A DNA stretch of 64,000 bases from positions 25,854,001 through 25,918,000 of the forward strand of contig NC_087258.1 of NCBI RefSeq assembly GCF_037042905.1. Direction: 5' to 3'. Shown here one piece after another: positions 21,545-64,000 of the stretch. The first letter of the stretch is position 1. Every line of letters begins with the position of its first letter. A program made the translations under genes and the position numbers. The DNA comes from Lytechinus pictus (Eukaryota). Below the pieces are notes generated by a model. That model was given only the letters and a program-made list of their open reading frames with translations, did not search any database and had not been told where the DNA came from.

Positions 21545-22729
21545 ATGATGGATTTCGGAAGTGAAAGTCCGGAAATTTCGGCAAGTAGCAAGTTGTTCAA
21601 AAATGAAAGCTTGTCACGTAGCATGGATGCAGGAATTGGAAGTTTGGCAAGTAGCAGTAGCGATGTAGACATGGTAGATAATACGATGGACATGCCTTAC
21701 GAAGTGCAAATCCCGACATACGACCCAAGTCTTGCAGCCTTGTATTACATTCTTCTAGCGATCGCCCCTGTTGCAGTTGTGGGAAATGGACTAACATACA
21801 AAATACTTCGGGATGACAGGAGTGGCTTTGATGATGTCATGAAAAAGATGTTGAACTCGTTAACCGCATCCTATGCTGTTTTCGCCATAGGGGAAGCACT
21901 GGTGTCTCTATTACAGATTGCCCCTTTAGACCTGAACGTGAAAGAAAAGGTGTGTATGTACCAAGCGCCACTGATCTATATGTGTCTCTTTTTGACTATA
22001 AGCTTAACCTGTCTCCTGAACATTAATCGTTACATCACGGTCACAAGACCCCTTCGACATCACCTGATAGTAACAGATCGGAGAGCATCAGTAATGATTG
22101 GAGTGGTCATAGCGAAATCGGTGCTCTTGACCATCCCCATGACACCGTTTCCAGGAACTCCCGCAGAACAACTTCAGAGACACTCCTGTATGCAGAATGA
22201 GGACGGTACTAAGGGCAGTTACTATCTTATATTCTTGATTGCCTACGTAGTCCTAGGCGCTGGTGTAACAATCATCTCGACAGTCCGGCTGTTGGGTATT
22301 TCCAGAAGGCAGTCGAAAGCCATTGCAGGTTTTCGCAAACATACTGGTAATGTGGTCTCCAGTTCGGGAGGAACCAAAGTCACCGGCCAGAGCATACAGA
22401 CCGTCAACACATCAGCTAGTAATTCAAACTCAGATGGAAGCGACGAAGTGGCTAATATCACGAAGAAGCAGCATTCTCGAAACAGGAGAGCTTTCTTGAC
22501 CATCTTCACCCTAAATATTGTGGTCATTTTCTCATGGATCCCTTTGATTATCTTCTACATCCTTGCCTTTGGTGGTGTCAAGGTTTCACCAATCTTGAAG
22601 TGCATTATGATGATCTCTATCATGTCAACAACATGCTGGCATTGGCTGATTTATATCACGACCAACAAGGTGTTTCGTGAAACAACCCTGTCCATCCTCA
22701 AGAAGTTCCGGGCCAATCTATCCTGGTAG
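21545..22729 (+). CDS. Orphan class-A (rhodopsin-like) GPCR, paralog 1; single-exon CDS
   Basis: Seven hydrophobic segments, GN in TM1, Cys at top of TM3, NRYITVTRPLRH, SWIP in TM6, and helix-8 NKVFRE. First ATG is at 21545; a downstream Met is possible. Confidence 0.88.
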   Translation: MMDFGSESPEISASSKLFKNESLSRSMDAGIGSLASSSSDVDMVDNTMDMPYEVQIPTYDPSLAALYYILLAIAPVAVVGNGLTYKILRDDRSGFDDVMKKMLNSLTASYAVFAIGEALVSLLQIAPLDLNVKEKVCMYQAPLIYMCLFLTISLTCLLNINRYITVTRPLRHHLIVTDRRASVMIGVVIAKSVLLTIPMTPFPGTPAEQLQRHSCMQNEDGTKGSYYLIFLIAYVVLGAGVTIISTVRLLGISRRQSKAIAGFRKHTGNVVSSSGGTKVTGQSIQTVNTSASNSNSDGSDEVANITKKQHSRNRRAFLTIFTLNIVVIFSWIPLIIFYILAFGGVKVSPILKCIMMISIMSTTCWHWLIYITTNKVFRETTLSILKKFRANLSW

Positions 22730-22869
22730 TACAGACGTAGGAATCGGTTGTTTTCGTTGGTGTGTCAGTAAAAAAAAAAGTTCTCCTATCGTACGACGTA
22801 CATGTTTGTATACATATATACGGGACATATGGGGCATTTTTTGGCGTCTGAATTATTTTCACTTAACAA

Positions 22870-23156
22870 CATGGCCCTGGGAAGCGGGATGCTAGGGGTG
22901 CTGAAGCACCTCGAAAGATTTTCCCAGGGGTGCTGCGTGTATTATTCTCCATAGCCAGCACCCCCATGAATTAGGTGTGGCAAATTTGATAAATATAAGG
23001 AAAATGACCAAAATCTTTTAGTTTTACCTATGTTTTTCCTTTTTTGGTCAAATTTCTTGGCACCAAAACTGCCTTCACTTTGTAGTGAAACCCCTTTTTT
23101 GTGCTTGTCAACTTTTCTTCAGCACCCCCACTAAAGGAATCCTTCCAAGGGCCCTG
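22870..23156. mobile_element. hAT-like MITE
   Basis: CATGGCCCTGGGAAG ... CTTCCAAGGGCCCTG, with 8-bp flanks CTTAACAA / CTTAATAA. A related partial copy lies at about 51009-51330. Confidence 0.75.
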
Positions 23157-23349
23157 CTTAATAATCACGATGATGATAATGATGACAATAATGATGATAC
23201 TACTACTGCTATTTAATTTTTTTTATTACAACCATGGAGCTACTAGCTCCATGATGCAACATATACATCGTCTCATATGACCATGAGCTGGACGGTGTGA
23301 GAGGGGGCACGGCTGCTTTCTTCTCCTGACGCTTCAATCTGCAGCAGAA

Positions 23350-23714
23350 TATAAAAAGTCAGCGGCTGCGCCAGTGTATTTCTGTAAGAAGAGAAAAAAA
23401 TGTGCTCCCCACATTAGCCACATTCATGTTTGACTGGGTACTTATCGCGGAGCAAAGCTTCACCTTTTTAATGTAATAATCAGTTTCCTTTTACCTTCAA
23501 TGAACCAAGTGCCCCCGTTCTTCTTTGACTACTGGAAGCTAATTAGGTATAAGTTGTATTTTTCTGTCTCTCTTTCAAGTCCGTTGAACATTGAAGATTC
23601 GATCAACATTCGAAATTCGAGCAATTTAAAATGATACCGATAGTTTGACGTGAAATCGCCATAAAGTAATTAGGTTGCTAACCCATCGTAATGAACTTGC
23701 TTTCTTTTCTTTAG
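23350..23714 (+). promoter_or_regulatory. Putative TATA box, non-coding first exon and 5'-UTR intron (23547-23714) of GPCR paralog 2
   Basis: TATAAAAAG near 23350, donor AG|GTATAA at 23547, branch-like GCTAAC near 23677, and acceptor TTTCTTTTCTTTAG at 23714. Confidence 0.4.
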
Positions 23715-23939
23715 GACGGTCAATAAAAGGGTTGCAAATTCATTTCAGTTTGCTTATCCCCATTTGATCAATCTCTCACATATTAAAAATAAACATTATG
23801 ATTGACGGTGAACATAATGGATGATAAGGCTCGCTATACATTCGTGTGGCTGCTTCAATATATCTCCAACCGCGCTTGAATCTCCTTCTCACTCGCAGAA
23901 CTAGCTGATCCTAATAAGTGGAGGTCTATTTTGAGTTCT

Positions 23940-25067
23940 ATGCAGCCTTTCTTATTTGTGTCAATGATGATCATGCGTAACACCAGAAGTTTTGCAAATA
24001 GCGTAAACATTACAAGTACGGGTACCAACCCTGGTTTGGTAATTCCGACATACGATCCAGAAATTGTCTCCTTATATTATTGCCTTTTGGTGATGGCTCC
24101 TGTTTCAGTACTAGGAAATGGATTTACCTTCAGCGTCCTAAGCAGAGAGACGAGTGGTTTTGACGATGTTACGAAACAAATTCTGAAGTCATTTACGATA
24201 GCGAACATTGTCCTCGGGATCGGAGAAGCACTGGTATCGCAGGCACAGCTTCACCTCTCAACGGACGCGAAGAGAGACATTGTCTGCCTTTACCATGGCC
24301 CATTCCTTTATCTGTGTTTCTTTTTTATACTATCTTTAACTTGTCTCCTGAACGTCATTCGTTATATCACGGTCACAAGACCCCTAAGATATCACTTGAT
24401 AGTAACTGATCACAGAGTATCAGTGGCTATTGGAATAGCAATAGTGGAATCCCTACTTCTAACCACAATCATAGCACCATTTCCAGGAACTCCCGCGGAA
24501 CAGTTTCACAGACACTTGTGCTCGCAGGACGAAGAAAAAGTAAAAGGCAGTTACTATCTCATGTTCTTGATTGCCTACGTGATCCTAGTGGCTGGTATAA
24601 CAATAACCTCGACAGTCAGGTTGTTGTGTATTTCCAGAAGGCAGTCGAAAGCCATTGCAGGTTTTCAAGAACACACCTTTAAAGGAGCCTCCAGTAGTTC
24701 AGGAGAGACCCATGTCACCCACCAGAGCCTTCAGACCGTCAACACATCGGCTGCTAATTCCAAATCGGATGGGAGTGACAGAGTGGCTGCAATCACGAAG
24801 AGACAGCATTCTCGTAATAGGAGAGCCTTCTTGACCATATTTATATTGAACATTGTGGTCATTGTCTCATGGATCCCTCTGACTATCTTCTACAGCCTTG
24901 CCTTTAGCGGTGTCAAGGTGTCACCAATCTTGAAGTGCGTTATGATGATATCCATCATGTCAACAACTTGCTGGCATTGGCTCGTTTATATCACAACTAA
25001 CAAGTTGTTTCGTGAAACAGCCTTGGCTATCCTTCAGAAATTCTGGGCCAGATTATCCCAGCGCTAG
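23940..25067 (+). CDS. Orphan class-A GPCR, paralog 2; single-exon CDS
   Basis: Seven TM segments, IRYITVTRPLRY, SWIP and CWHWLVY. Clearly paralogous to 21545-22729. Confidence 0.88.
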   Translation: MQPFLFVSMMIMRNTRSFANSVNITSTGTNPGLVIPTYDPEIVSLYYCLLVMAPVSVLGNGFTFSVLSRETSGFDDVTKQILKSFTIANIVLGIGEALVSQAQLHLSTDAKRDIVCLYHGPFLYLCFFFILSLTCLLNVIRYITVTRPLRYHLIVTDHRVSVAIGIAIVESLLLTTIIAPFPGTPAEQFHRHLCSQDEEKVKGSYYLMFLIAYVILVAGITITSTVRLLCISRRQSKAIAGFQEHTFKGASSSSGETHVTHQSLQTVNTSAANSKSDGSDRVAAITKRQHSRNRRAFLTIFILNIVVIVSWIPLTIFYSLAFSGVKVSPILKCVMMISIMSTTCWHWLVYITTNKLFRETALAILQKFWARLSQR

Positions 25068-25760
25068 GGAGCTCATTTCTCGTTCTGATAATTCATTCTT
25101 TCTTCCTTCATTTCTTCTACCCTTTCTTCCTTCCTATATTTTTCTTTTCTGTCTTTCTTGTTTTTTTATTTCTTTCTTTCAATTTTTCTTTCTTTCATCT
25201 TGAAATGTTTAAAGTAGTAATATGTAATGAATATTTAGCCACATCAAAATGGACATTTATCTCTATAAAGACCGATATAATCGCCTAGTTTGTTCAAATC
25301 TAGATAAAAAAAAGAAGAAGAAGTTTCGTGTTCCCGAATGTTGACTAATGATTGTTACTGGTTTGACGGTCATTAGTCGTGTTTATACTGAGGATCCAAA
25401 TTCGAGGTCATTCCGGTTGATTCGAAGGGATGTCAGTCCCCTCGAATTCAGCACACGGCTTATACTGACAAGCATACGCCGACTTTTTTTGCCCGTCAAG
25501 GTAGAAAGAGTGTGTTTATATAGAAACCTCTCGAATTAGCGCCATGTTCATTCGGATAATCCAAAGTCAAATTCATGCTGGCGGATTCGATAGCTTCTTA
25601 TAATAACACAACCTACCTTGAAAGGTGGATTAGATAGCTGGAATATGCTGCTGGCATGCACCGTGTCCACCCGGAGGTTTCGCATTTCGAGATACACTCA
25701 AGTCCGCTGAAATGAGCTCGAATTCCCATCTTCATCGACATCCGAGTGATTTATATATAA

Positions 25761-26624
25761 CATAGGCGGATCCAGCTTTTTGCGAAAGGGGGGGGGGGGG
25801 CGCACTGCGGAGCGGCGCACAAATTTTTGCACTTCACCGGCGCCATAAAAGAATAAGGTGTATATATATATATATATATATATACATATCTATATGACTC
25901 ATGAGATAGAGACACATATCTCACCAACAAATTAATGCGAGCGCGAAGCGCGAGCTGAAATTTTTATAGTATACTGACCTGAAAAAAGGAAAAAAAGGTG
26001 TCTGTTTAGGGCTGTTTGTAGTAACTCATGAGGATACATATCTCACTACACAGATAATGCGAGTGCCGAGGGCGAGCTAAAATTTCTTTATATTCTGACC
26101 AGAAAGGTTTATATTCTAAGCATTTTGGTACCAATGATTAAGATGGGTATCTAAAAAAAACAATAGATGCGAGCGCGAAGCGCGAGCTTAAAATTTTGAT
26201 ATTTCGATCTGAAAAAATGACAGTTTAATGGACGTTTTTAATAGAGAACAAGATTATATCCAACAAAAGATTATTGCAAATCGAAGCGGGAGTTCTTCTG
26301 ATTAGAACTGAAAACGGGACATTCTATTCACATATATTTTATGATGAAAAGTATGGGGTTTTGCTACAGAAATGATGTGAGCGCGAAGCGCGAGCTAAAA
26401 ACTTTTATATTCCAATCTTAAAAGCGGACAATTTGCATGATTTTAAATAAAGAACGAGTTGTGTAGCTCGATCTCACTTGCTGATTTCTGTGTAACATTA
26501 CCATCTTATTTTATTTTTGCACATGCGGAACTATTGGGGGAGGGCAAAACGATATGTTTGCCCCCCAAACCCAATATTTTCATTGGTGGGGCGATCGCCC
26601 CTGTCCCCCGGATCGACGCCACTG
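25761..26624. mobile_element. Non-autonomous hAT-like element with periodic GCGAGCGCGAAGCGCGAGC motifs
   Basis: Termini CATAGGCGGATCC ... GGATCGACGCCACTG. The internal motif recurs about every 110-125 bp. TSD is not clean. Confidence 0.65.
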
Positions 26625-27439
26625 CATATACAATGATACTACAAGTCATCATGAAATATTTGTAATACATCACCAATCCAGGTTTATATATTATCATTCA
26701 ATTTTCATGTACATGATGTTTAGGCCTATATACAGACTTATATATTGTGATGCTTTTCATCAAATCTAATGCAATTTGTAATGATGAGTAATTTGTATCT
26801 AATTACTTTGATGAACCTGGATATAATGCTTATGAGCTGAATTCAGAAAGAGATCTTTCAAGACAGAGCTTTGGAAAAAGTTCTCCAGTTTTATAGGTAT
26901 CGTTATTTTTGTTTCAAACTTCTTCCTGAGTGATCAGATGAATAATATTTAACTTAATGGAAGATGAAAATAAATCAAATTTTGTGGCGTAAACATTTAA
27001 ACGTTAAAACAAAGGTATTGACAAACTGTATTTTTACATTGAAAATGATGTTTAGTGGTTTAAGGTCTAACTAATATACGTCTGCATGGTTGCGTAATTA
27101 GACACTCCCAGTATAAGCAACGTTTTAGACTAAAATATCGAATCATCTTCATAAAACACTAGAGTAGCTGTCTTACACTAAAGGCCATAGAGGTGGCACA
27201 ATGTGGAATGTGTAAAGAAAAAAAGTGACTGACCTTTTTTTACTAAAGCATTGGAAAATAAGATCAAAATTAAAGGATTTGCTCTACATTTTTGTATGAT
27301 TCTGGGATTTCTTAATATAACAAATTAAAGATTTCATGACATCTGTGGGCAACTGTCCCGCCCCAGTCCACTCTGTAAGGGCATGCGATAAGCTTTGTTA
27401 TTCGTTATGACCATTTAACAATAAAATGTATAACCAGCT

Positions 27440-28100
27440 AGGTGCCGCTGATCATTCTTGACCGGCGCCGATCTAGATTTGGTTGGCAATAGGCCCTTCT
27501 TCATTATTCTACCGGCGCCTATTTATTGGAACCAGGGGACGCTGATCATTCTTGACCGGCGCCGATTTAAATTTAGGTGGCGCCGGTTAAGACAAAGGCA
27601 GCGCCGATTTGTCTTGACCGGCGCCGATTTAAACAAGTAGTGCTGATTATTTTTACAGACGTCACGTAAGATTCAGGCAGCGGCAATTCATAATCGACTG
27701 GCGCCGATTTAGAACCAGGAGGCGCCGATTATTCTTGACTGGCGCCGATTTGGATTTAGGTGGAGCTGATTATCCTTGATCGGCGCCGGTTAAGAACTCA
27801 GGCAGCGTCGATTTTTCTTTACCGGCGCCGATTTATAACCAGATGGCGCCGATTATTCTTGTCCGGCGCCGATTTAGATTTAGGTGGCGCTGATTATCCT
27901 TGATTGGTGCCGGCCGGTTAAGACTCTGGCAGTGCCGATTTTTCTTGACTGGCGCCGATTTATAACCAAATAGCGCTGATAATTCTTGCCCGGCGCCAAT
28001 TTCGATTTAGTTGGCGCTGATTATCCTTGATTGGCGCCGGTTCTGGCAGTGTCGATTTTTCTTGACTTGCGCCGATTTATAACCAGATGACGCCGATTAT
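27440..28100. repeat. Minisatellite of ~20-21-bp GGCGCCGATT subunits with a ~125-bp higher-order period
   Basis: GGCGCCGATTTA(T/G)AACCA recurs near 27700, 27823, 27951 and 28068, with six subunits per period. Confidence 0.85.
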
Positions 28101-28512
28101 TATTATTATTTTTTTTTTTTGAGCGGCGCCGCTCAAATATTAGGGGGGGCGCGCGCCCCCTGCGCCACCCCCTGGATCCGCCGATGTATAAATACAGAGT
28201 AATAAAACCACCTTGCACTTTCATCTCGGTCTGTGCCAATTGGTAAACGTTGGCACCAATCACAACATTGAGTTTTATTTATGCGCTTATGGTTTGGACT
28301 CGAAAGGTATTGTGGTTTTCAATTAGGGTGCTGCAAGGCGAAAATTGTTTTGGGTTCAAAGAGAAAAAAAGTGATTATCGGTTTATTAGCTCGGAAGCAT
28401 AATATTTAGTCAACGTGTTTTTCAACTGGGGTGCCCGAAAGCGCAATTTTTTGTAAGTTTAACTAGAAAAAGGTGTGATTAAACGGTTTATTAGCTAAAC
28501 ATAATATTAATA

Positions 28513-28672
28513 CCTTGGTCACATTTGATCTACGGCGATCGTACGGCGAGTCAAAAACAGCCGTTTTATTAATTTTAATTCAAACCACCTATATGTAGTT
28601 GGTACACAAAATGTTAAAACGGCTGTTTTCGACTGGCCGTACGGCCGCCGTAGAACAAATGTGACCAAGGTA
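28513..28672. mobile_element. Palindromic MITE (same family as 33286-33447)
   Basis: TACCTTGGTCACATTTG.TCTACGGCG ... CGCCGTAGAACAAATGTGACCAAGGTA. Confidence 0.85.
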
Positions 28673-28958
28673 TACGTCATATACGTTCTAAGGGGATATT
28701 CCCGACCTTTAGTTCGAGAACGCGAACGCTTATTTACAACGGTAGTTGATTTTGGAAGAGACTTTTGGGCCCGTCGTCATGGTCGTAAAACTCTGTCCTG
28801 CAATGCAAATTGTGTGACATGATGTTTTTTTTCGTTTTGCATCTGGAACGGAAACATTCAATCTGCGTTCCGTGTGCAACATTCTGGTTGCTACTATGGT
28901 AACAGCGATATATCCGATTTAGAGCCACATTTGATTCCGCCCAGAGCTCGAGAGGCCG

Positions 28959-29260
28959 CCCGGGGGGCCCACTTCCATTGAAGAGTGGATACCAGGCGCG
29001 ACCTCGCGTAAAAAGGGAAAGAGTGGTCAAGTACGTTACGTATAGGCCTATGTAACGTTATAAGGGTGTCGAAAAACGATGTTTAAAATACTGAAAAGGG
29101 GGATATATTTCCAAAACTTGTATGGTTTTACAAGCTAAATGCTTGTTAAGAGATGCATTTTCATAATCTGGAAAAGACTTGCTTCCCTTGTTTAGGGTGA
29201 TTTTCGAAACCCCATGGTCGCGCCTGGTATCCACTTATCAATGGAAGTGGTCCCCCCGGG
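28959..29260. mobile_element. MITE with CCCGGGGGG termini
   Basis: About 45-bp TIRs: CCCGGGGGGCCCACTTCCATTGAAGAGTGGATACCAGGCGCGACC / GGTCGCGCCTGGTATCCACTTATCAATGGAAGTGGTCCCCCCGGG. Confidence 0.85.
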
Positions 29261-29715
29261 AATTTGAATCTAATCCCCCATATCTGGGGAAAGTAAAACG
29301 TAATGCCCATTACATTGTGTGCTAGAGGCATATCGTTTGTGTAGAAGGAGTGAAAAAAGAAAAAAACCCGCAAAATCGACTGAAGTTCAGACGAATTTGG
29401 CATACTGCATGCTGTGTACATATCAACGCATGCGAAATGTTTCGGCTGGAGAGGTGATCTGACCCATGGAATCAATTGCCAGTGATCCACCAATAATCCA
29501 CATTAAATGCAAAATCGATTCGATGGACTGTAATGATCTATATCTAAGCCTCAATTCAGTAACTTTTCCTCACTCAATACGTACTCGATTTGTTTGAAAA
29601 CCACTTTCTTATCCATATGTCATAATCTATACGATGATGACTATCAGTCGTAATACGTGCATGTATGGTGCAGGTGTCGCAGGAAAGAATTTTGCACACG
29701 AAAAGCAGATCTGTA

Positions 29716-29857
29716 GGGCCTGTAACCCCCCTGTAACACAAAGCTTAGCATTGATTGTAGAGCAGTTTTCTACGTTTGATTCAATAATTTATAATGTACA
29801 ATCAATCTTAAAAATCAAGTGTATGATTAAGCGTCAACTTTTGTGTTAGAGGACCCT
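29716..29857. mobile_element. Short degraded MITE
   Basis: TAACACAAAGCTTAGCATTGAT ... ATTAAGCGTCAACTTTTGTGTTA imperfect inverted ends. Confidence 0.45.
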
Positions 29858-30539
29858 AATATTAGCGTCCGTGAGGTTTGCGAAAGGTCCCAATTGTGTC
29901 CTTCTCGTATACCGCGGCCATTATTTGGAATCTACTCCCCCGGTCACTTCGCTGTCCTAGTCCTACAGTAGGGCCTACATGCCATCGTTAAAGAAATAAA
30001 TGTTTTGTATATTACACACATCTTGATCTTGTTTTTCATCACTCATTGATCTAATTGGTTTCCTGTTGGGGACTAGTGTCTTCAGTTGTTAGAGCTCCTG
30101 TAATGAAACATGTTAGAATGGTTAGTATTGATTCGACCTGACTTGTCTCTTAAATTGTTGGTGAATGCAGCAGCAATCAGGAGGGCACCGGATGCCACCA
30201 GGAGGTAGCTAGGAATTCTGCCAGTGTTTAAAAACTGTACATAACTAGCAAACGCTTCTAACCTTTTCATCATGATATTTAGGATTAATTTTTAGATTTT
30301 GTATAATTTGAAGCTTTGCAGGAGAACTATTGCTGGGCAAGCACCATGAATGTCTTTAAACGATGTGTGTGTGCTTTGTAAATCCGCATCATTTATATTG
30401 TTTATTAGTATTATCGTTATCATTGATTTGGTAATTTGAAATCTAATACCAACATTTCTTAACACTAATGTGTGATGTGATTAAGAAATTATTGTCAAGG
30501 GATTTGAGGGATCTGAAATGTGGGATGTTACAACATTCG

Positions 30540-32562: not shown

Positions 32563-32609
<47 letters not shown>

Positions 32610-35747: not shown

Positions 35748-35930
35748 CACTCTAAAAACATTCAATACAATTTTACCCAATATTGGGTAGAAAAGGAACA
35801 TGCATGTTTGCTGGGTATTTTTTTTACCCCAATATTGTGCTTTTTCTACACAACATTGCAGCATCTTTTTACCCAACCAACATGCATGTTCCCATTTTAC
35901 CCACTATTGGGTAAACCTTTTTTTAGAGCG
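35748..35930. mobile_element. CACTA-like MITE in an SLC45 intron
   Basis: TA|CACTCTAAAAA ... TTTTTAGAGCG|TA, internally palindromic. Relative at about 54876-55071. Confidence 0.8.
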
Positions 35931-35988
35931 TATATGAAACATATTTTCTCTCTGAATATTTACAAGCACGTCTTTCCTCCCATTTCAG

Positions 35989-36888
35989 GTCTTGGTGGCG
36001 GGGTCGGATACATCTTCGTAGCCATCGATTGGATGTCGACATCTGTCGGGGGAGCTCTGGGTAGTCAACTACGCGTCATCTGCCTGTTCAACGTCGCCTT
36101 CCTGACGATCAGCCTGGCACTTACACTCTTCAGCATTCCCGAGGTGGCACACGAACAACAAACGAACACGTCAATGATATCTACGCCGGCTTCATACACT
36201 TCTTATGAATATAACGACGACGAACACTCACAACCATCGTCAATTCGAAATACATCCATACATGTTAACATAAATGTAGATGAAAGACAGCCTTTACTTG
36301 GCGAAAGAAACAACGTAGCTCAGTCTGATCTACCCCCACCTGAATGTCCCCTAAAAAGGAACGCACGATCTAGAAAAACGGTAAGGGATCACAGTATGCG
36401 TGGATATGATGTGGATCGGTTTAAGAAATCGGCTGCAAGAAATCCCGAGCCATCTCATTTAGAGTTCTTCCCCAATGTAGACAGCAATGACGCTCAAATA
36501 CACGAAAACTGCGCTGGAGGTCCCTCCAGGGTGTCAGCATCGAGCACAGATAACGGACTCAACGTCGATGTCAATTGCGACGTCCGTACGGATCGTTTTT
36601 CCATCGCCAGAAGTCCGGCTGCGATCTTACCCGTGACATCGACAACACACAGTAATGCATCCAGCCATGGAATTAGCGTTGTGGCTCAAAGCAGTATTGC
36701 TTCTGATGACGAGAGAATGTGGTCATCGGATGAGAAAGAATCAATTTCCGTCAAACATTTGATGATGTCAGCCATATTCATGCCATGTGATCTCCGAAAG
36801 TTGATGTTCTGCAATTACATCTCTTGGATAGCCTTCTTAACGATGCTTCTATACTTCACCGATTTCATGGGCTGTACTGTATATCTTG
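35989..36888 (+). CDS. SLC45-family transporter, coding exon 3
   Basis: ttcAG| then GLGGGVGY..IDW, a long central loop, LYFTDFMG, and donor |GTAAGG. Confidence 0.92.
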
Positions 36889-37255
36889 GTAAGGAAATCT
36901 ATGTGATTTGTTTAGATCAAATTCAGGTCACTACTTCGGTTCTATTCAACTCCATTTTTATTGTTTCCTTAACATGTATGTGTAATGTAAAAAAATAATT
37001 TGTCTGAGAAAATCGACTGTTTTTAAAATGTAGCCAGAAAAAAATCTCACTCCAAAAATATTGCTTTGAAAAATAACAATTTTATTATGAAGGTCCGACA
37101 CGTTTTTTTGGAAGCGTTACGCACCATTGGACCATGTTCTTAGGTGCTAGGTGACAAGGATATATCCTTTAGCATATAAAATGATCACCAGTCTTAATAT
37201 CTTACGAACAACTTTTTTATTAAACACCCACCATCAATCTGATTTCTATTTCCAG

Positions 37256-37623: not shown

Positions 37624-37673
<50 letters not shown>

Positions 37674-38111: not shown

Positions 38112-38704
38112 GTACAGTTTTTAACACTAATTTCATTTTCAAAGGAAGAAAGGCTGCGTAGAGATTTAAAAATTAAGTGGAAAATGCTTTTTAACTCGAT
38201 CTGCGTCTTCATCATGTTCATTTTTGACGTTGAGTTTTCAGCACTGATCTGCCAGAAGTTTACTAACAGTGTTGCCCCGAGAACAATTACCAGTGGTCAC
38301 TGAAAAGTTTATCTTTTAGGGCGGGGGATGTTGAGATGAAGGTGGAGAGATGGCTGACCGTACAAAAACGAAATCAGATGATAACGTGTAGTTTTGTTGG
38401 TTTATTGAAGGGGGAGGGGGTGGGTTGTACTCCCAACGTTACTCCGCATTCCGCTACCCCGTACTCAAGTATTCGTCAGTTTTCATCCTCTTCAAGGCAA
38501 CAAAGATCCTCTTCATATTTTATTGCCCTAAAACCGAAGTACACAAACAAATCAAATGAATTTTATTTCTCCCCAATATCATGTTTATCATTTTCAATTC
38601 GAGTCAATCAAGGCAAGTCAACTGATTTAATTTTGCCCTTTTACCAGTCTTGTGTTTCTTATTCAATTGATTTCACAGGTTTATACTGTTATTCTTTTTT
38701 TCAG

Positions 38705-38917
38705 TTTAAAAATCCTGATGGTGGCTTGGTTCGCAGTACGTCGGGTGATCTGGCTGGTCTGGGAAGTCAGGTCCTATTCGCGCAAATCACGGTCTCCACG
38801 CTGCTCGGCCCCATCATCCATTCGACCGGTACTCGACTCGCCCTCGTCGTCTTTGCTTCATCTACAGCCTTTATTTCGTCTATCCTCTCAGCTTGTTTTT
38901 TAAGTTACGAGTTATGA
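38705..38917 (+). CDS. SLC45-family transporter, coding exon 6 (stop)
   Basis: tttcAG| then FKNPDGGLVRSTSGD...AQITVSTLLGP...YEL*. The six exons sum to 1965 nt, giving 654 aa plus stop. Confidence 0.9.
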   Translation, partial: FKNPDGGLVRSTSGDLAGLGSQVLFAQITVSTLLGPIIHSTGTRLALVVFASSTAFISSILSACFLSYEL

Positions 38918-45384: not shown

Positions 45385-45537
45385 NNNNNNNNNNNNNNNN
45401 NNNNNNNNNNNNNNNNNNNNNNNNNNNNNNNNNNNNNNNNNNNNNNNNNNNNNNNNNNNNNNNNNNNNNNNNNNNNNNNNNNNNNNNNNNNNNNNNNNNN
45501 NNNNNNNNNNNNNNNNNNNNNNNNNNNNNNNNNNNNN
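45385..45537. other. Assembly gap (153 N)
   Basis: Run of N. Confidence 1.
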
Positions 45538-47278: not shown

Positions 47279-47744
47279 TTTCAATGTGTGGATGAGAGTA
47301 GCTGGCCAAATACGTCGTCTCCTTGCACAAAGTACCATTCTCTATCGATCACATCATCAGCTGGCGAATATCCAACTTCTTCAATTTAAGCCCTGACTCC
47401 ATACGTTGGCAGAATGCTTAAACCCTCTGTGCCTGAATCAATGATTGGTGCGTACAGATTCTCATATCATTTCCGAAGTATTTACACTCGGGACTATATC
47501 TACCAGCTATTGCGGTTACTGCTTCCAACAGTTGTTAGCTTCTTGGAGGTTGTCCATCCTTCCATCAGAGTGTTCGAACCCCATGTATGTTAAAAAAATG
47601 TTGAAATCCACGGAGAGTTATGCTTAATTGAGGGATTACTTTTTCAAGGGTCCAAATTCCAGAATCGAATTCTCAAATAAATTCAACGTCACAGAAAAAA
47701 AAACACAGTAACAAAAGAAAGTGATGTCATTTGAAGCATTTACA

Positions 47745-48767
47745 TTATTTTGTGGTATCTGAGCAGTATATTCTGAGCTTTTTCTTAAAGACATCTTTGG
47801 CTGTCTCCCGGAACATCTTATTTGTGATCAGGTACACTAGGCAATGCCACCACGTTGCAGACATGGAAAGGAACACAACCACACTTCCAAAGACTGGAGG
47901 AAAATTAACACCAACGCCTAACAAGACATAGAAGATGGTGAGAGGTAACCAAGAGACAAAGACAACAACGTTTAGGAGAAAGATGGTCAAAAGTGCCCTT
48001 CTGTTGCTCTTACGCTGTCTCCTAGTCGTTGCCGTTTCCTCTCTAGCATAAGCTGAGGTGTCATCGCGGTACTTGCGCTGATTAACCGTGCTAACCGTTG
48101 CAGTCATCGTGATTTCCCCATCTGCTATCGCCCTCGATTGTTTTCGGGAAATGACCAGCAAGCTCACTGTTGAAACGACTGATGTGAAAGCCGCCATCAG
48201 CAAGAAGGAAACGCAGAAAATCAAGACGAAATTGCCTTTGAGTGCATCCACATTAAATTCACATATGTTCATCATGAAGTCTCCTGAAGGTGTCTTGGGT
48301 ATAGGCAATCCCACAATGGTCAGACGAATGGATGAAGTTATGGCCACGGACATGACTACAACGGCCCTTCGATCAGTAACTATATGATGATACCGAAGGG
48401 GTTTTGCAACCATTATATATCGGTTCAGATTAAGAAGACAGGTAAGCGTTAATGTCACAAAGAAGCAAGGACAAATCAATACACCTTGGTAGATGCAGAT
48501 GGTAAATCTGGCATTGGCAGACATGGGGACAATCTGGAGGAGTGATGTAATCGCCTGACCAATCCCGTAGGCTGCATACCATACAGTCAGTGCTTTGAGA
48601 AACATTTTGGTTACAACGTCGAAACCACTTGTTGAATAGCGGAGAATGCCGTATGTAAAGGCGTTTGCAAGGACAGACAAAGGAAGTTGTGATACATTAA
48701 GGTAAAACGGCGTGGAATACGTTTCAAGGTATTCAGAGCTAGAATTAGAAGACGCCATCGTGCTCAT
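47745..48767 (-). CDS. Orphan class-A GPCR, paralog 3; single-exon CDS
   Basis: Seven TM segments, N-glycosylation sequon NSS, NRYIMVAKPLRY, SWLP, WWHCLVY and NKMFRE. First ATG at 48767; 48758 has better Kozak context. Confidence 0.88.
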   Translation of the reverse strand: MSTMASSNSSSEYLETYSTPFYLNVSQLPLSVLANAFTYGILRYSTSGFDVVTKMFLKALTVWYAAYGIGQAITSLLQIVPMSANARFTICIYQGVLICPCFFVTLTLTCLLNLNRYIMVAKPLRYHHIVTDRRAVVVMSVAITSSIRLTIVGLPIPKTPSGDFMMNICEFNVDALKGNFVLIFCVSFLLMAAFTSVVSTVSLLVISRKQSRAIADGEITMTATVSTVNQRKYRDDTSAYAREETATTRRQRKSNRRALLTIFLLNVVVFVSWLPLTIFYVLLGVGVNFPPVFGSVVVFLSMSATWWHCLVYLITNKMFRETAKDVFKKKLRIYCSDTTK

Positions 48768-54830: not shown

Positions 54831-57401
54831 TGGTGTGGTTGCTATCCCATATTATTTACAAGATTGCTATTATTTTACTGAGTAAAATTTTACCCAATAT
54901 TGAGTAAAAAGGGAACATGCATGTTTGCTGGGTATTTTTTACCCCATATTGGGCTATTTCAACGCAACATTGTGTAAAATTTACCAAATATTGGGTATCT
55001 TTTTACCCAACCAACATGCATGTTCCCAGTTCCCATTTTACCTAATATTGGGTAAACTTTTTTTTAGAGTGTATGTATAACAAATTATAAACCTCTCTTT
55101 AAGAATGTCGAATAATCCGTTCCTCTGATTGGTCGAAATTGAGGTCATGTAATCAACCATGCCTGAAAAACAACAAACTAAGGTGGTTACCAAGGGCAAC
55201 GGGCATAGTTAACAAGATTTCTGCCCGTGGCCCCCTGATACGCCCCTTAACGACGGGCATGGCAAAATTTGGCTGAGATCTCCATTTGATTGCGTGCAAA
55301 ATGTTGTTTCCTGCGGTGATTGCGGGTACCATAAATATCCGCGCGATTTGATCGAAAGTTTTAGACAATTCGCACATTTACGCGCTTATTGCGCAAGTGC
55401 GCGCAACGGATATGACATATCGATGGAACGATGCTGATCTCTGAGTTTTGCTTGTTTATTCCTGTTTAAAAAATATGGCATTAATGAAAAGAAGATTAAC
55501 TTATTAAGGACATAACGGATGTATCAATCATCAAGTTTTGCTGCAGCTGTTCATTCAAAATCAAATGCATGCTCGCAAAAGGTGAGTCGGCTGAAAAGAT
55601 AAGACGGTCATTGCACTTTATAGCCAGGTATGACAAACGACAACGTTAAGCTAGGTTGGGGCGTAAGGTCTAACGTTAGGCCTACGTTAGCTTAGAACCG
55701 GCTCAGAAGTTAGACTCTTAGAGTAGACTCTGTTAGATCTCACTAAGTTAGACCTAATGTTAATCGTAGATCTGACGTAGATCTAAAGTTAGACTCTATT
55801 GCAGATTTATTTTAAGACGTAGGCTTACTGTAGAATCTAGATCTATTTGAGACCCTTATTTGGTTCCTAAAATATCTAGGCCTACCGCCATTCTACGGAC
55901 TGCTTTGATATTCGACTTCGAGACCTAACGTCAGAGCTGAGTTAGGGCCTAACATTAAGTAACAACATGTTGGGCCTAACGTTAGCATGGGCTAGGGCTT
56001 TAGTTTTAGGCTTAACTGGTTTAAGATCTAGCCTAGACCTAGACTAGATCTAACGTTTAATTCGGTTCATAAAATATATATGGACTGCTTTTATATTCCA
56101 GACATGGTTGTTTCTTTCGGCTCGCGGGTACTGCACCGGCCAGACCATGCCCTCGGGCATAGTAGCGTTGCAGTCCCCTTGAGCCTCTAGAAACAACCAT
56201 GCCTCTCAAAGCAGTCCATATATCTATACTATGAAATTGCACCCCCTTAAAAGAATTACGTCCCACTCGACCGATTAAGAATACTCCACCCCCTTACTCA
56301 CAAAAGAAAGGAATTCGTGTCTACGCCCGTAAATTGTAAGGTTAGGTTATTAGGAATTCATGACAATTTTATTATCATATAATTAATGTAATAAGCCTAA
56401 TGAGTTAGTGAAATTTGTTGAAATTTGAGGTCGTAAAACTGGATATTTAAGCACTTTTTTAATTAGGAATAGGATTTATGAGTTGATATGTTTTTAACTA
56501 TCTATGCGAGCGCAAATCGCGAGACGATTTTTTTTTAAACTGTCATTAAAGGGGGATTTTAAGTAGTTTGTTACAGAATTAATACATAAAGAATCTTATA
56601 GAATAAACAAAGACAATATGTATAGGCATTCTTGGTAAATCATTAAATGCGAGCACACAGCGCAAAAAGCTGCAAATGATATTCACACCATTATACGGGC
56701 ATTTTACATAGCACTTAAAGAAAAATAAATTTGTAAATCAAACAAAATAATAAAAGCTCGATGTCCGAGCTGAAATATGTTTTATATATTGACTTCATAA
56801 CTTGATATTTTGAGCCTAATACATATCAGCCTATTGAGCAAGATATGCATCTCATCAAACAGGCTATGCGTGCGCGAAGCGCGAGCGAAAATTTAATAAA
56901 GTGACATGAAATATATATCTTAAATCATTTTCCAAGTCTTCCCCTGACCTTATTTTATTAATTCGTCTCCCTCCTCCTATTTTTCCTCTTCTTTTTTTCT
57001 CCTTTCTTTCCCCTTCATTTTCTTTTTTTCTTTGTTTCTCCCTTTTTTTGCTCCGCCAGTAGGGACCTCGCCCCCTGGATCCGCCTATGTATAACATCCA
57101 GCTGAGTTACAGTACATCACTGTTTTTTTTAGACAGTTCGAAGTTCTAAAAACGTGATTTTGGGGGCAAATAGTAAAATGTTTGCCTGATAATGAGTGAT
57201 CTCATTATGACCTTTAAATATGCAACTGTTTGTTGTGTATGTAAAGCATAATTCTCAAGGATCCCCAAAACGGCTGAATCATCCTAACACTAGCACCACA
57301 TTCATAAATATACATGAGGATCGCCTTCTTGCCTGATAATAAATTTACCCCTAACTCCCCTAAAGTAACCACCTAACCCTATTGGGGGTATAATTTTCCT
57401 G

Positions 57402-57584
57402 GTGGGTGTTTCATAAAGCTGTTCGTAAGTTAAGAGCGACTTTAAGAACGACTGGTGAACCTTTCTTACGCGCTAAATAATCACTAATGAACATAATGGT
57501 GAACCGTCACTTACCACAAGAAAAGGATCACCAGTCGTTCTTAAAGTCGCTCTTAACTTACGATCAGCTTTATGAAACGGCCTC
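57402..57584. mobile_element. Harbinger-like palindromic MITE
   Basis: About 60-bp TIRs GTTTCATAAAGCTG.TCGTAAGTTAAGAGCGACTTTAAGAACGACTGGTGA, CTG/CAG flanks. Confidence 0.85.
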
Positions 57585-58117
57585 CAGGTACGCCAATACG
57601 CGGTCCAATATACGGAGAGGCTGACAGGCTGTGCAAAACATGAAGCCTTATGTGTTATGACGACTTTAAAACAAAGACTACGCATGGAGAAAACGTCCGC
57701 CCCTCGGTGGAGAATTCGTCCACTCAGCACGGTCTTTTTGCCCGCGGACAAAAACCCCTGAAATACTCTAGGATTTTTCATCCGCGCAGACGGATTAAAC
57801 TGGTCGGACGTTTTCGCCTCCGACACCGGGACTTGTACACTTCATACCTCGCCATGTCGACATATCGACTTGACAAGATAGAATATATCCCCATGTCGAA
57901 TTAATATATTAATCATGTTAATTAGACATGGCAAGAAAAAGTATCACGCTATGTCGTCATGTCGATGGCATTTTCAAGGCTCCGTAATAGGGGTAATTGT
58001 CTGGAGGGTAAATTTCCGGGGGGTAACAGTCCCCGGCGGTAATAATATGGGGATAATATTTTCCTTGAAGTAGTTGTCAGGGGGTGATTGCCCTGATTTG
58101 GTTATTGTTATGGAACC

Positions 58118-60138
58118 CAGGCGTGGATCCAGGATTTCGTGGGGAGGGGGCCCAAATTTGACTTGATTTTTGGCGCCCATGTGTACTTTTCGAAAAATGG
58201 CGCCCACACCCTCCCGGCCAGGCTAACTGAAGTGCCTTGAATGGATTTTGAATTATCTTATAAGCACATTAAAAAAAAGGCAATTAAAGGCCAATTTTTT
58301 AATGTTTTCTTGAAGAAAATCCATGAATATATAATGCAATATCAATGGGAGCGCGAAGCGCGAGCGAATTTGGGGGGGGGGGGGGGTTTCAATTTGGTTT
58401 AACTTCTCACCAGAGTAGGCCCTAGTAGAATATTGTGTGGACGGGAGCTGTAGTTCCTTTACTGTTTTTAGAATAGCCTTTAATGATATTAATGATAACC
58501 TCTTGGGAATAATGCAACCTCGAAGCAATCGACTCATTCTCCTCATCAGTGGCGTATTTATTCAGCATGGGTGCATGGGGGGGGGGGGGGCTTGTTGAAC
58601 TTTTGTACAGGGCACCAAGATAAATGAAATGGGGGGGGGGGGGAGAAGTTCAAGAAAATCTGAGATTTTATTCTTAAAAACACATTGAGGTTTCTCACAA
58701 AGCCTAAATAAAAAATGAGAACGCGAAGCGCGATCTGATTTTTTTAAAATTTTCATTTATTTTATCCTGAAAGCCTAAGTCAAGGGCGGACCCAGCTTCC
58801 GCCAATAGGGAGGGGGGGGGGTCAATTTTTTCACCCATATTTCCCCGCTTGGCCGCTCAAAGTTGATTTTGTTTTTGTTTCTTTGAAGGGGTTGTCCCAG
58901 TGGTGTAATGAGCCAACAAATTTGAGGGGGCTCGATATGGCGTATCGCATAAAATTAATAAGAAGTTGCCAGTGAACGAAGTGAGCAAGCATATATGCTG
59001 ACATTTTTATTACAAAAATACAAGGTTGTGATAGATTTTGACATAATATTTCGAAAATAATATTATATTTCATCCTAATCCCTTTTCCTTTTTTTCTTGC
59101 TCGTGATTCTTTTTTTTTTTTTTTTGGGGGGGGGACGCCCATGTCCTAACAGTCATTTCCTAGCTTTACTTTATAAACAACATAAATGTGTAATAATCTC
59201 ATAAGTCCTATGCAAGCTAAAAAAATGAAATTTCATGTATTTAGTCCTGTAAATTGAACATTCTGGGCAATGTTTTTAAACCTGAACAGGACGCGTATGT
59301 AACTAGATAATTACCAAGCGCGGGCAGAAATGTTAAATATGCGTTCTGGCCTGGTCGAAAGGGACCTGTTAAGTACGTTTTGCAGTTAGCCATTACGACG
59401 ATGCATATATCAACGATTAAATAATGTGAGCGCGAAGCGCAAGCAGAACATTTTTGATATTCCAATCTAAAAAGATGAGATTTCAAACCCCCCAACGGGA
59501 CACTCGATTCATGTTTTGTCAATCATGAAAAAGGATGGGTAATTTTTGGTATCTTCCTACATTAATAATGCGAGCGCAAAGCGCAAGCAGAAATTTTTTG
59601 ATATTCTGATCTGAAACTGGATAATTTTAGCACGTTTGTAATCAGATCAAGCTGCTTATCTAAAAAAACATGCGTGCGCGTGCCTTAGAGATAGACAGAA
59701 TCTGGGCATTTTGAATACAATTCATTTTTCATCATGAAAATCAATAGCAGAGCGCGAGCTGATTTTTTCATGGGGACACAATATCAAATGTCCCCCCATG
59801 TTTTTGTCACAAAAGAAGTGTGACCTTCTGGGGGGGGGGGGGATATGTGCATACCTTCTCAAGGAAATGAGAGTTGATTCCCCTTAAAAATATAAAGAAA
59901 AAAAAACATTTGCCATGTAACTTTTCGATGCAATTAACGGTGGGTAAATTCGCATTCAAAAGCAGCACAGCTAGCCCTCTTTTTTCTCTTGTTTTTTTTT
60001 TTTCTTCTCTTCCTTTCTCCCTCTTCCTCTCTCTTTTTTAATTCTCTCCCTTTCCCCCTCTTTCCATCTCTTTTTTTGAGCTGGGGGGGGGGGGGGGTTG
60101 AGGCAAGGCCCCCTCGCCCCCCTATGGATCCGCACCTG
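58118..60138. mobile_element. hAT-like composite element inserted into the right arm of foldback copy 2
   Basis: Termini CAGGCGTGGATCC / GGATCCGCACCTG. 8-bp flanks ATGGAACC / ATAAAACC (ATAGAACC in copy 1 and in the intact left arm). Confidence 0.75.
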
Positions 60139-61222
60139 ATAAAACCCCATGGTCTCGTATCATTTGACCTTTGGACCTCTCGATGACATTTGATAAATCT
60201 GATCATAATTTTACACACACTGCGGACTATCGGACCCGCGGACTAACGGACCCGCGGACTATCGGACCTACGGACTAACGGACCCGCAGACTATCGGACC
60301 CGCAGACTATCGGACCTGCGGACTAACGGACCCGCGGACTATCGGACCCGCGGACTATCGGGATGCCCCCATCATATCTGGTGCATTTATGGTGATAAAT
60401 GCAGCATTCTGAAATGGAAAATGGCCGCTATGGGCCCTTATTGTATTATGTACAAGTTGAACGAGGACAGATAATTTTCACAAAAGGGCATAAAATTATG
60501 TCGACCATTTTGAATTTTGAAATATAACATTTATCACCTAAATTTTAGATGATATATTTCGTTAGTAATCATGTTTTCAGACAATATTTCACTCATACAA
60601 CACCATTTAGTCAGGCAAAGCCAAAATATGTTAAAATCATTTGTCCCCATTCACATTGTACATAATACTATTGGGGCCTGTAGCGGCCATTTTGACTTTT
60701 AAAATACAGTATTTATCACCTACCTGGCAGAAGAACTGATAAATCTTGTTAGAAATTATGCTTTCAGACAATATTTTACCCAAAGATCACAATTACGTGC
60801 ATTTATGGTGCTCACTCATGTGAAAAATTATTTCCTAGTGCGCATTGTACATAATACAATCAATGTCTATGGCGGCCATTTTGAAAGTCAAAATACAGTA
60901 TTAAACACAAACTTTAAACCTGAATGATATATTTAAAAAACCGTTAAAAACCGTGTGTCTTAGACAGTATCCCATTTATTCATCACAAATAAATGTATTT
61001 CAGTCCTCACTCTTGTGATTTCTTTGGTCCTCTCTCATTGTACATAATACTTTTAGGGCCTTTGGCGGCCATTTTGAATATCAAAATACAGCATTTATCA
61101 CATACATGGCATATTGAATAATATATTTCGTTTTAGTCAATATTCTACTCGTTTCTCTATTGTGCATTTTAATGTTGGGCAACATACTGCCCACTGTGTT
61201 AGGTATATATATTGGTAATATA

Positions 61223-61228
<6 letters not shown>

Positions 61229-61302
<74 letters not shown>
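61229..61302. repeat. (TA)n microsatellite inside a CACTA-like MITE remnant
   Basis: Long TA run followed by TTACCCAAATTTTTAAGAGTG. Confidence 0.85.
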
Positions 61303-61305
<3 letters not shown>

Positions 61306-63193
61306 TGGGCAATTATTATCTGAGCAAATTTATTACCCAAATTTTTAAGAGTGCACTGGTTAAGTGATTATTTTGTGGTGCTTCTTATCTGAATTTATAT
61401 TGTCTGCCAACTCAATCCTCGCATAATAAAACTCATTATTTGACAAATCTTCTTTTCCTTACGTTCATAGTTTATGAAAGCAAAGGCCCTGAATAATTTT
61501 AGCCTATACCTATCACCAAAACACGTTCTGTGCGATTTTATACGCTTATTGAAAAACATTGAAATCAAAAAGCTTTGTCCGACGTGCCAAAATGACAACC
61601 CCATCCCGTAAACTGAATTATAATATTTTTATTTCAAATTGGTTGTCCACGTCGTTATATAATATCTTGTGAAATTCAATAGGGGTATCATTGAATTACA
61701 TGGTATGTTTACAAAAATGAGTTGGAAAATGTATATATACTTGCCTGTCTGAAACATATATCCCTCTATTTCGATTGAAATACTTTCATTTTCTGAGGAG
61801 AGGTCAGATTGAAATGAAATTAATGACTAAATCAAACGCAGCATTACTTCTCCCATGCAAATGGTGATTTTTAAGCAGGCTGAACTCGTTAACTTCATTT
61901 GCTCCCAAATTACCATATTTGTATTCTGTATCACGGCTTCTGCCCGAACGAACAGAATAATGGCATTATTTCGGTACTTATATCGTTCTTACAGCTCAAG
62001 ATATTAGAATACCATTTTGTGTTAAAGCTAACGGCATTTTCTTGTTGACACGGTTTTCAAAATATCGCCTGGTGATGAGCCCTGCTAACATTGTGAAAGT
62101 TACCATAATCTTAAATTAAGGGACTTAATTGACTATAACGATTTCTTTTCCGACTTTACTAAAAAAGAGGAAATTTGATGAAAAAAGTTGAATCCACTAG
62201 AATTAGATCACAAACTCATTACACCAAAGTGGTGATAGATCGAATAAATATCTTTTGCCTGCCAGTTGTAATTAGGCCCGTGTAACCAAGTGAGACAAAA
62301 ATGTGGGTTTTAAGTTTTCAGATGATAAAGATCTCACTTCCGGGAGGGTGGAGTCCTGGAGTCGTCTAATACATTGAGCCTTTTGTATCATAGTATTTGC
62401 TGGTCAAGGAAACAATAACAGTTTTAAAGGAAGGTTTTCAGACATATATACAACTGGGAAACTTATTAGGTATGACAAATAATCACCACTGCACGGGTCA
62501 TTTAATATATCTACATGTAGTTTTGTAGAGAAGTTTCTTACAATATATGGGAAAAACTCAACATGCTGAAAGAATGGGTTGAGGAAATATTCCGTCTAGA
62601 GGTGACATGAGGCGTGTAATGAGCCTCCCCCCAAATAATCATAATAATAATAAAAAAATAAAAAAATAGGAGACGGAGGTAACATCGCTCATGTAAATTA
62701 GTTTTTCCATTTGAAAGAAATAAAATCTCACTTTGTGATACATTTTGCCATAATACTTAAAGGGAAAGTTAATAAGACCAAAAAGTTCATTGTAAACAAT
62801 GGCAGAAAAACAATAACAATTATTGGCGAAGGTTTAAAGAAAATCCATCAAAGAATAAAAAATTATTAGAATTTTTATTGTTTGATTTGTGATTTCAGAT
62901 GCGAGCAGCTTTACTACATATCGTATATGGTAAAAGTCAATGAAATGTCATTTTCTCAGAATATTATAAATGTGCTTTTTTATTGTACCTTCAGTATATC
63001 AATAAACAAATCATTTCACATCCACTCCTAAAAAGAAAGTAAAAAAATAACTCATCACGAACCACTAAAATTGAAATTGATTAAGTTACGATTAATTAAG
63101 GGATTACTTTCTCAAGGGTCAAAATTCTCCTCACAGAAAAATAGCACTATAACAGAAAGAAATGATGTCATTCGAAGCATTAATAAATCTATA

Positions 63194-64000
63194 TTAATTT
63201 GTGGTATTTGAGCAGTATATTCTGAGTGTTTTCTTAAAGACATCTTTGGCTGTCTCCCGGAACATCCTATTTGTGATAAGGTAAACGAGGCAATGCCACC
63301 ACGATGTAGACATAGACAGAAACATATACACACTTCCAAAGACTGGAGGAAGATTGACACCTACGCCTAACAAGACAAAGAAGATGGCGAGAGGTAACCA
63401 AGAGAAAAAGACGACAACGTTCAGGAAAAAGATGGTCAAAAGTGCTCTTCTGTTGCTCTTACGCTGTCTCCTAGTCGCTGCCATTTCCTCTCCAGCATAA
63501 GCTGAGGTGTCGTTGCGGTCCTTGCGCTGATTAACCGTGCTAACCGCTGCAGTCACCGCGATCTCCCCATCTGCAATCGCCTTCGATTGCTTTCGGGCAA
63601 TGACCAGCAAGCTCGATGTTGTAACGATTGACGTGAACATCGCCATAAGCAAGAAGAAAACGCAGAAAATCAGGACGAAATCGCCTTTGAGTGCATCCAT
63701 ATTTGATTTACAGAAGTTCATCATGAAGTCTCCAGAAGGTGTCTTGGGTATAGGCAATCCCACAATGGCCAGAAGAATCGAGGAAGTTATGGCCAAGGAC
63801 ATGACTACAACGGCCCTTCGATCAGTAACTATGTGATGGTACCGAAGGGGTTTTGCAACCATTATATATCGGTTCAGATTAAGAAGACAGGTAACAGTTA
63901 ATGTCACGAAGAACCAAGGAAAAGTCAACACACCTTGGTAGACGCAGATGGCAAATCTGGCATTGGCAGACATGGGAACAATCTGGAGGAGTGATGTAAT
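63194..64000 (-). CDS. Orphan class-A GPCR, paralog 4 (N-terminus outside window)
   Basis: Close paralog of 47745-48767. Frame is open to the window end (ITSLLQIVPMSANAR). NRY, SWLP and WWHCLVY present. Confidence 0.88.
   Translation of the reverse strand: MTSLLQIVPMSANARFAICVYQGVLTFPWFFVTLTVTCLLNLNRYIMVAKPLRYHHIVTDRRAVVVMSLAITSSILLAIVGLPIPKTPSGDFMMNFCKSNMDALKGDFVLIFCVFFLLMAMFTSIVTTSSLLVIARKQSKAIADGEIAVTAAVSTVNQRKDRNDTSAYAGEEMAATRRQRKSNRRALLTIFFLNVVVFFSWLPLAIFFVLLGVGVNLPPVFGSVYMFLSMSTSWWHCLVYLITNRMFRETAKDVFKKTLRIYCSNTTN

Follow-up and report, generated by a model that had tools for sequence, protein, structure and literature searches.

Models of how class-A GPCRs (G-protein-coupled receptors) are activated depend on a few near-universal microswitches. 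The melatonin receptors MT1 and MT2 carry NRY for DRY and have lost P7.50 (NAxxY), yet they couple to G proteins, namely Gi (PMC8786939), and the TAS2Rs carry H7.49-S/P7.50-xx-L7.53, in which substitutions of H7.49 abolish signalling (PMC11574016). These precedents indicate that such substitutions are compatible with G-protein signalling. In sea urchins, lineage-specific GPCR expansions are described as surreal-GPCRs in the passages of PMC7042368 and PMC5442662 that cite Raible et al. (2006). Here we analyzed four receptor genes, G1 to G4, in a 64,000-nucleotide stretch of Lytechinus pictus DNA (assembly GCF_037042905.1, contig NC_087258.1, 25,854,001 to 25,918,000, forward strand; hereafter the window, in which positions are counted from its first letter). 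They belong to a small intronless orphan family of class A in which most of the microswitches are replaced, and this family would test which parts of the activation relay are required.

We listed the long open reading frames (ORFs) across the window and checked the coordinates of motifs on window positions. Four long ORFs were found where an earlier note on this DNA had placed them:

21545 to 22729, plus strand: G1, an intronless class-A GPCR gene of 394 codons counted from the first ATG (ORF extent 21512/21545-22729).
21623, plus strand: start of the RefSeq L. pictus model of G1 (P0164), at Met27.
23940 to 25067, plus strand: G2, a tandem paralogue of G1, 375 codons from the first ATG (ORF extent 23931/23940-25067).
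47745 to 48758, minus strand: G3, a paralogue of clade B (see below), 337 codons (ORF extent 47745-48758/48812).
63194 to 64000, running 207 nt past the window end, minus strand: G4, a clade-B paralogue with its first 69 codons outside the window.
L004:1465-2478, minus strand, in a separate genomic extract: the full G4 ORF, 337 codons.

All four ORFs matched the Pfam family PF00001 (7tm_1) with 44.5-62.6 bits and E-values of 5e-17 to 2e-11, above the gathering cut-off of 30.5 bits, which bears out the claim of the earlier note that four intact GPCR ORFs lie here. G1 and G2 are 64% identical, and either of them is about 42% identical to G3 or G4. G1 is 99% identical to the RefSeq protein P0164, and G4 nearly equals RefSeq P0002. 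Their motifs lie as follows:

G1, plus strand: LTASY 21860-21874; NINRY 22019-22033; FSWIP 22529-22543; CWHWLIY 22634-22654; NKVFRE 22664-22681.
G2, plus strand: FTIAN 24192-24206; NVIRY 24351-24365; VSWIP 24864-24878; CWHWLVY 24969-24989.
G3, minus strand: LTVWY 48576-48590; NLNRY 48417-48431; VSWLP 47943-47957; WWHCLVY 47832-47852.
G4, minus strand: NLNRY 63866-63880; FSWLP 63392-63406; WWHCLVY 63281-63301.

Ballesteros-Weinstein positions were fixed by HMMER alignments with three receptors (SSTR2, alpha-1A and bovine rhodopsin), and the state at each position was read from MAFFT tables covering the family and its relatives. The four genes show the following states in the transmembrane helices (TM), extracellular loop 2 (ECL2) and helix 8:

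1.50: Asn in all four (kept).
2.50: Tyr in G1, Asn in G2, Tyr in G3, Tyr in G4.
Cys at 3.25 and Cys in ECL2: kept in all four.
3.49-3.51: NRY in G1, IRY in G2, NRY in G3, NRY in G4.
4.50: Ile in all four.
TM5: without any Pro in all four.
6.47-6.50: SWxP in all four.
7.47-7.53: CWHWLIY in G1, CWHWLVY in G2, WWHCLVY in G3, WWHCLVY in G4.
Helix 8: N(K/R)xFRE in all four.

The alignments placed every listed substitution and retained residue as the earlier note had claimed. Its two shared motifs, SGFD(D/V)V in intracellular loop 1 and (S/A)R(R/K)QS(K/R)AIA after TM5, were likewise confirmed by the coordinate check. The losses go beyond that list and include Y5.58 (to Arg, Lys, Ser or His), F6.44 (to Val), L3.43 (to Thr or Ser) and E6.30 (to Asn). 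Among the canonical D2.50, D/ERY, W4.50, P5.50, CWxP and NPxxY, only R3.50, Y3.51, W6.48, P6.50 and Y7.53 are left. In comparison with class A (PF00001), the family thus has N1.50, the C3.25-ECL2 Cys pair, R3.50-Y3.51, W6.48-x-P6.50, Y7.53 and F8.50, but it is without D2.50, D/E3.49, W4.50, P5.50, Y5.58, F6.44, N7.49 and P7.50. Instead, it has Tyr, Asn or His at 2.50, Asn or Ile at 3.49, I4.50, V6.44 and W-H-(C/W) at 7.48-7.50. Its class-A membership stands, given that the lost microswitches are consensus features and not strict criteria.

To find further members, the whole L. pictus genome was searched in six frames. The family there consists of six intact genes and one pseudogene, with five genes in tandem on one chromosome (C14) and one on another chromosome. 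The fifth tandem member, G5 (L005), follows 37 kb beyond G4 with the same orientation, and the unlinked sixth, G6 (L006), is about 30% identical and carries LTWTY, LNRY, GWSP and WWHCFVY. The cluster of four proposed earlier is correct for the window, but the array has this fifth tandem member, a sixth member exists elsewhere, and G4 itself extends beyond the window end. G3 and G4 are direct repeats 15,449 bp apart (47738-48037 versus 63187-63486, 90% identical over a 300-nt seed). The pseudogene (L042, C14:15152782-15153823) is a decayed relative of G6 with several in-frame stops and frameshifts; it has a stop at W7.48 and Trp in place of R3.50.

In an exhaustive phmmer search over 1.84 billion cluster representatives, only two clusters scored below 1e-30, and a search with the family alignment profile among 8000 candidates gave few additions. 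Sequences with the family motifs came only from L. pictus, Lytechinus variegatus, Strongylocentrotus purpuratus (P0009 and P0010) and one ENA assembly (ERZ26222911). Intact ORFs were found in all three named species; in L. variegatus, CM031028.1 carries a tandem array of at least four copies, and the S. purpuratus relatives of clade A show 62-65% identity. Sea-star proteins among the weaker matches retain D2.50, ERY and N7.49. One candidate, P0146, was rejected as a member; it has a WHxxxY string, but its TM7 reads WLQPVIY.

Across these sequences, H7.49, W6.48 and Y7.53 are invariant, as are Y3.51, P6.50 and helix 8, and R3.50 is invariant except in P0006 of L. variegatus. Positions 3.47 and 6.41 hold a conserved Asn, and no member has an acidic residue at 2.50, where one S. 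purpuratus copy has His. The codons of H7.49 (CAT or CAC) and of R3.50 (CGT, CGA or CGG) vary synonymously. At 7.47 and 7.50, G1 and G2 have Cys and Trp, whereas the remaining members have Trp and Cys, a reciprocal swap reached by single-base changes. The two positions are one helical turn apart, and the W7.47C/C7.50W swap looks compensatory. The family is defined by a combination, namely a non-acidic residue at 2.50, the retained R3.50 and His7.49.

Next, we built a maximum-likelihood tree of 79 sequences, with support from the Shimodaira-Hasegawa-like approximate likelihood ratio test (SH-aLRT). The family formed one clade (SH-aLRT 98), and this clade contained three subclades. Clade A holds G1 and G2 with P0009 and P0010 of S. 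purpuratus, clade B holds G3 to G5 with P0004-6 of L. variegatus, and the third holds G6 with P0159 and P0166 from the ENA assembly. The nearest neighbours were weakly supported, being the locus L038 (81) and then a large sea-urchin clade with NLY at 3.49-3.51 and QPxxY in TM7 (89). More distant relatives mostly have WWN(V/C/G/A/S)xxY together with D2.50 and D/ERY. The closest relatives retain either Asp2.50 or Pro7.50, which marks the His7.49 state as derived. Several of the losses also occur outside the family: P7.50 is missing from many relatives, and N3.49 is common to the family and the neighbouring NLY clade. L038 (C8:32762393-32763421; L038:1504-2559, plus strand) is an intact GPCR of 351 amino acids with Y2.50, NRY and WWTPVIY, in which P7.50 is kept and 7.49 is Thr; P0015 from the ENA assembly is orthologous to it. 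Its states suggest that the changes at 2.50 and 3.49 may have come before His7.49.

We then estimated the ratio of nonsynonymous to synonymous substitution rates (dN/dS) by the Nei-Gojobori method with codon bootstraps. Overall values were 0.34-0.65; no more than 4% of the codon bootstraps reached 1, and upper bounds were at or below about 1. The dN/dS comparison among paralogues that the earlier note had called for therefore falls below 1:

G1 with G2: 0.34.
G3, G4 and G5 among themselves: 0.42-0.45.
L. pictus with L. variegatus, clade-B pairs: 0.36-0.64.
Cytoplasmic half: 0.15-0.51.
Extracellular half: 0.25-0.87.
Disordered intracellular loop 3 (ICL3) and the C-tail: 0.6-2.8, with most values about 1.

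The cytoplasmic half had a lower dN/dS than the extracellular half in six of eight pairs, and between subclades the cytoplasmic side was more alike (48% identity) than the extracellular side (28%; p = 4e-8). The faster evolution of the extracellular half suggests that the paralogues may differ in ligand. The genes of the family are real and have intact ORFs, they form a monophyletic group, and they evolve under purifying selection. Because the ORFs are intact in three species, dN/dS is below 1, the same motif set recurs in three subclades with about 30% identity and in different genera, and the codons of H7.49 and R3.50 vary synonymously, the proposal that this is a functional subfamily rather than a product of decay is supported. 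The copy at 15.15 Mb on C14, with its stops and frameshifts, shows what decay looks like in this genome.

To examine the fold, an AlphaFold2 model of G3 was made from a 102-sequence alignment. It had a mean pLDDT (predicted local distance difference test) of 90.2 and a pTM (predicted template modelling score) of 0.86, with seven TM helices and helix 8, a continuous TM7, and an ECL2 that was partly helical and well ordered. Foldseek returned adenosine, galanin, 5-HT1A, CB1, GPR21, alpha-1A and beta-1 receptors with similar scores; all top matches were class A (adenosine, aminergic, cannabinoid), and no specific structural neighbour of G3 was among them. The look-alikes of G3 in the ESM Atlas were generic class-A clusters only. 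From the residues present, Y2.50 would contact H7.49 and the sodium site would be missing.

Based on these results, we propose that this intronless sea-urchin subfamily probably consists of functional, ligand-activated class-A receptors in which the middle of the activation relay has been replaced by a sodium-free cluster centred on His7.49. The receptors would still be ligand-activated and coupled to a transducer. The outer trigger would be retained in the form of W6.48, the P6.50 hinge and the TM3-ECL2 disulfide, and so would the inner effector residues R3.50, Y3.51, L3.46, Y7.53 and helix 8. The middle layer that usually links the two (D2.50 and N7.49 of the sodium-water pocket, P5.50 and F6.44 of the connector, Y5.58, and the locks at D3.49 and E6.30) would have given way to a polar-aromatic cluster of Y/N/H2.50, T3.39, T/S3.43, T/S at 7.45-7.46, W7.48, the invariant H7.49 and the Cys/Trp pair at 7.47/7.50. 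Given that no member has an acidic 2.50 and that H7.49 is invariant, a distinct sodium-insensitive activation core is plausible. The predictions are that sodium would not modulate these receptors, that their basal activity would probably be raised (N3.49, no ionic lock), and that signalling would be lost on mutation of H7.49. A stronger form of the proposal, in which W7.48-H7.49, Y/N/H2.50 and the paired Cys and Trp of positions 7.47 and 7.50 would constitute a sodium-independent switch within class A that converges on the His7.49 of the TAS2Rs, is offered only tentatively, and we would sooner bet against it than for it.

If this stronger form is true, the family would be a natural experiment in which replacements for the sodium pocket, for the PIF connector, for Y5.58 and for NPxxY all left G-protein coupling in place, and the switch His might be sensitive to protonation. 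The family would likewise reveal whether His7.49 is able to replace Asn7.49 inside class A, as in the TAS2Rs.

Several points weigh against a His7.49-centred core. Members of clade A differ at 2.50 (Tyr, Asn or His), and G2 has Ile at 3.49; the states at these two positions may be merely tolerated and not part of a new switch. R3.50 is lost in the clade-B copy P0006 of L. variegatus (L033:10001-11011), which has Leu (NLY) and the highest dN/dS, 0.49-0.65, and may be drifting, either losing function or changing its coupling. Values of dN/dS of 0.4-0.6 are fairly relaxed. The intracellular half outconserves the extracellular half in class-A GPCRs generally, and the same contrast is therefore weak evidence for a specific partner of this family. 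As for how unusual the family is, the NLY/QPxxY expansions in the same genome are equally non-canonical, so that it is less exceptional than it looked.

We also considered whether these receptors are constitutively active or self-activated orphans whose signal is set by their expression level, as proposed for GPR52 and GPR21. This best survives of the alternatives, although we consider it unlikely. D3.49N would free R3.50 from its intrahelical lock, and with Asn at 6.30 the ionic lock would be missing as well; the receptors would also lack the sodium site, which acts as a negative allosteric element, and Thr or Ser replaces L3.43. In addition, the ECL2 of the G3 model, as described above, would suit self-activation, and the PDB matches by sequence and by fold include GPR52 and GPR21, with weak similarity over TM6-TM7-helix 8; both receptors, like the family, are orphans. 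However, with E-values of 1e-5 to 1e-7 these matches do not surpass those to SSTR2, alpha-1A and rhodopsin, raised basal activity from such substitutions would be an extrapolation from other receptors, and the extracellular half tends to change more quickly than the intracellular half, which would fit paralogues that bind different ligands. Orthology with GPR52 or GPR21 was rejected, the matches being partial (E 3e-7 to 4e-4) and at best equal to those with these three receptors.

A second alternative is that the genes encode atypical receptors that do not use G proteins (arrestin-biased, scavenger or decoy, or chaperone-like), canonical coupling having been lost with most of the microswitches. 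At least eight canonical switch positions are altered, and the atypical chemokine receptors are a generally known precedent for altered DRY regions. However, R3.50, Y3.51, Y7.53, W6.48, P6.50 and helix 8 are held invariant, conservation of the protein is highest on its cytoplasmic face, and the melatonin receptors and TAS2Rs use G proteins despite comparable substitutions, which makes this alternative improbable.

Less probable still is the suggestion in the earlier note that the His and Cys residues sense metal or pH, that is, that the buried H7.49, together with C7.50 or H2.50, is titratable or metal-binding. The invariant His7.49, the common Cys at 7.50 and the His2.50 of one S. purpuratus copy are what such a sensor would use. 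However, C7.50 is Trp in G1 and G2, most members have Tyr2.50, the site lies deep in the bundle away from the extracellular face, and the TAS2Rs carry H7.49 without being pH sensors; nothing we found supports the suggestion. Decay, with the motif losses reflecting relaxed constraint, can practically be dismissed, because the moderately high dN/dS of clade B (0.4-0.65), the R3.50 loss in one L. variegatus copy and the single true pseudogene are outweighed by six intact ORFs out of six, the retention of the motif set across subclades and genera, and a dN/dS below 1 with neutrality (about 1) confined to ICL3 and the tail.

Returning to the proposed His7.49-centred receptors, we compared them with the known families. 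The sea-urchin expansions, represented here by the NLY/QPxxY clade, are likewise echinoid-specific, intronless and tandem, with non-canonical motifs and N3.49. However, they number tens to hundreds of genes versus six or seven in this family, which is conserved between genera, and they have L3.50, no C3.25 and Q7.49-P7.50, whereas the family has R3.50, C3.25 and H7.49 and no P7.50. In terms of the surreal-GPCRs, the family shares the single-ORF, tandem, sea-urchin-specific genes (five in tandem on C14), but with six intact genes and one pseudogene it shows no rapid large lineage-specific expansion. The earlier placement of these genes among expanded chemoreceptor GPCRs thus fits their intronless, tandem arrangement but not their small number or their conservation between genera. 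In L. pictus, the large tandem expansions with NLY, QPxxY, no C3.25 and Ala8.50 occupy L008-L030 on several chromosomes, and another GPCR group has W-N-G/A (L007, L022 and L026).

The melatonin receptors differ from the family in keeping N7.49, where the family has His, and they also retain D2.50. None of them was among the best PDB sequence matches of the family, and there was no specific affinity. The TAS2Rs share a conserved His7.49 in a degenerate NPxxY equivalent and are also intronless and tandem, as well as chemosensory, but they have FYxxK and L7.53 versus R3.50-Y3.51 and Y7.53 in the family. The TAS2R profile was not among the Pfam matches of the four ORFs at E up to 1. On these sequence grounds, the His7.49 common to the family and the TAS2Rs is convergent.

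In public annotation the paralogues bear inconsistent names (GPR52-like, 5-HT6-like, GPR21, rhodopsin GQ-coupled-like), as happens when best-hit naming meets sequences that have no orthologue. The opsin identity implied by the RefSeq label on G1 was rejected; Met stands opposite rhodopsin K296, so that there is no Schiff-base Lys7.43. A literature search found no paper on the family or its motif set (WHCxxY or H7.49 in class A), the papers on H7.49 being about TAS2Rs, and a search on the S. purpuratus and L. variegatus accessions gave no match. Sea-urchin biology thereby gains a small, conserved orphan family that is publicly mislabelled and distinct from the large chemoreceptor-type expansions, although its value is limited by the many motif-divergent GPCR lineages that sea urchins carry.

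Apart from the receptor genes, the window contains one assembly gap:

45385 to 45537, no strand: 153 N, intergenic, with CT-rich low-complexity flanks.

The nearest receptor is G3, 2.2 kb off, and the sole ORF spanning the gap is a low-complexity artefact. Given that the gap lies outside all receptor genes, no claim on G1 to G4 needs continuity across it. The receptor array is not continuous: transposons interrupt it, and so does an unrelated multi-exon gene. The multi-exon gene encodes a membrane protein and is represented by long ORF pieces at 35808-36998 and 38336-38917 (plus strand) between the receptor genes; these have no Pfam match, and their language-model look-alikes weakly suggest transporters of the major facilitator superfamily. 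A reverse-transcriptase ORF of a non-LTR (long terminal repeat) retrotransposon lies at 97-2232 on the plus strand, and a 578-amino-acid ORF at 4624-6360 on the minus strand encodes a multi-pass membrane protein with a repetitive N-terminus rich in Pro and Glu.

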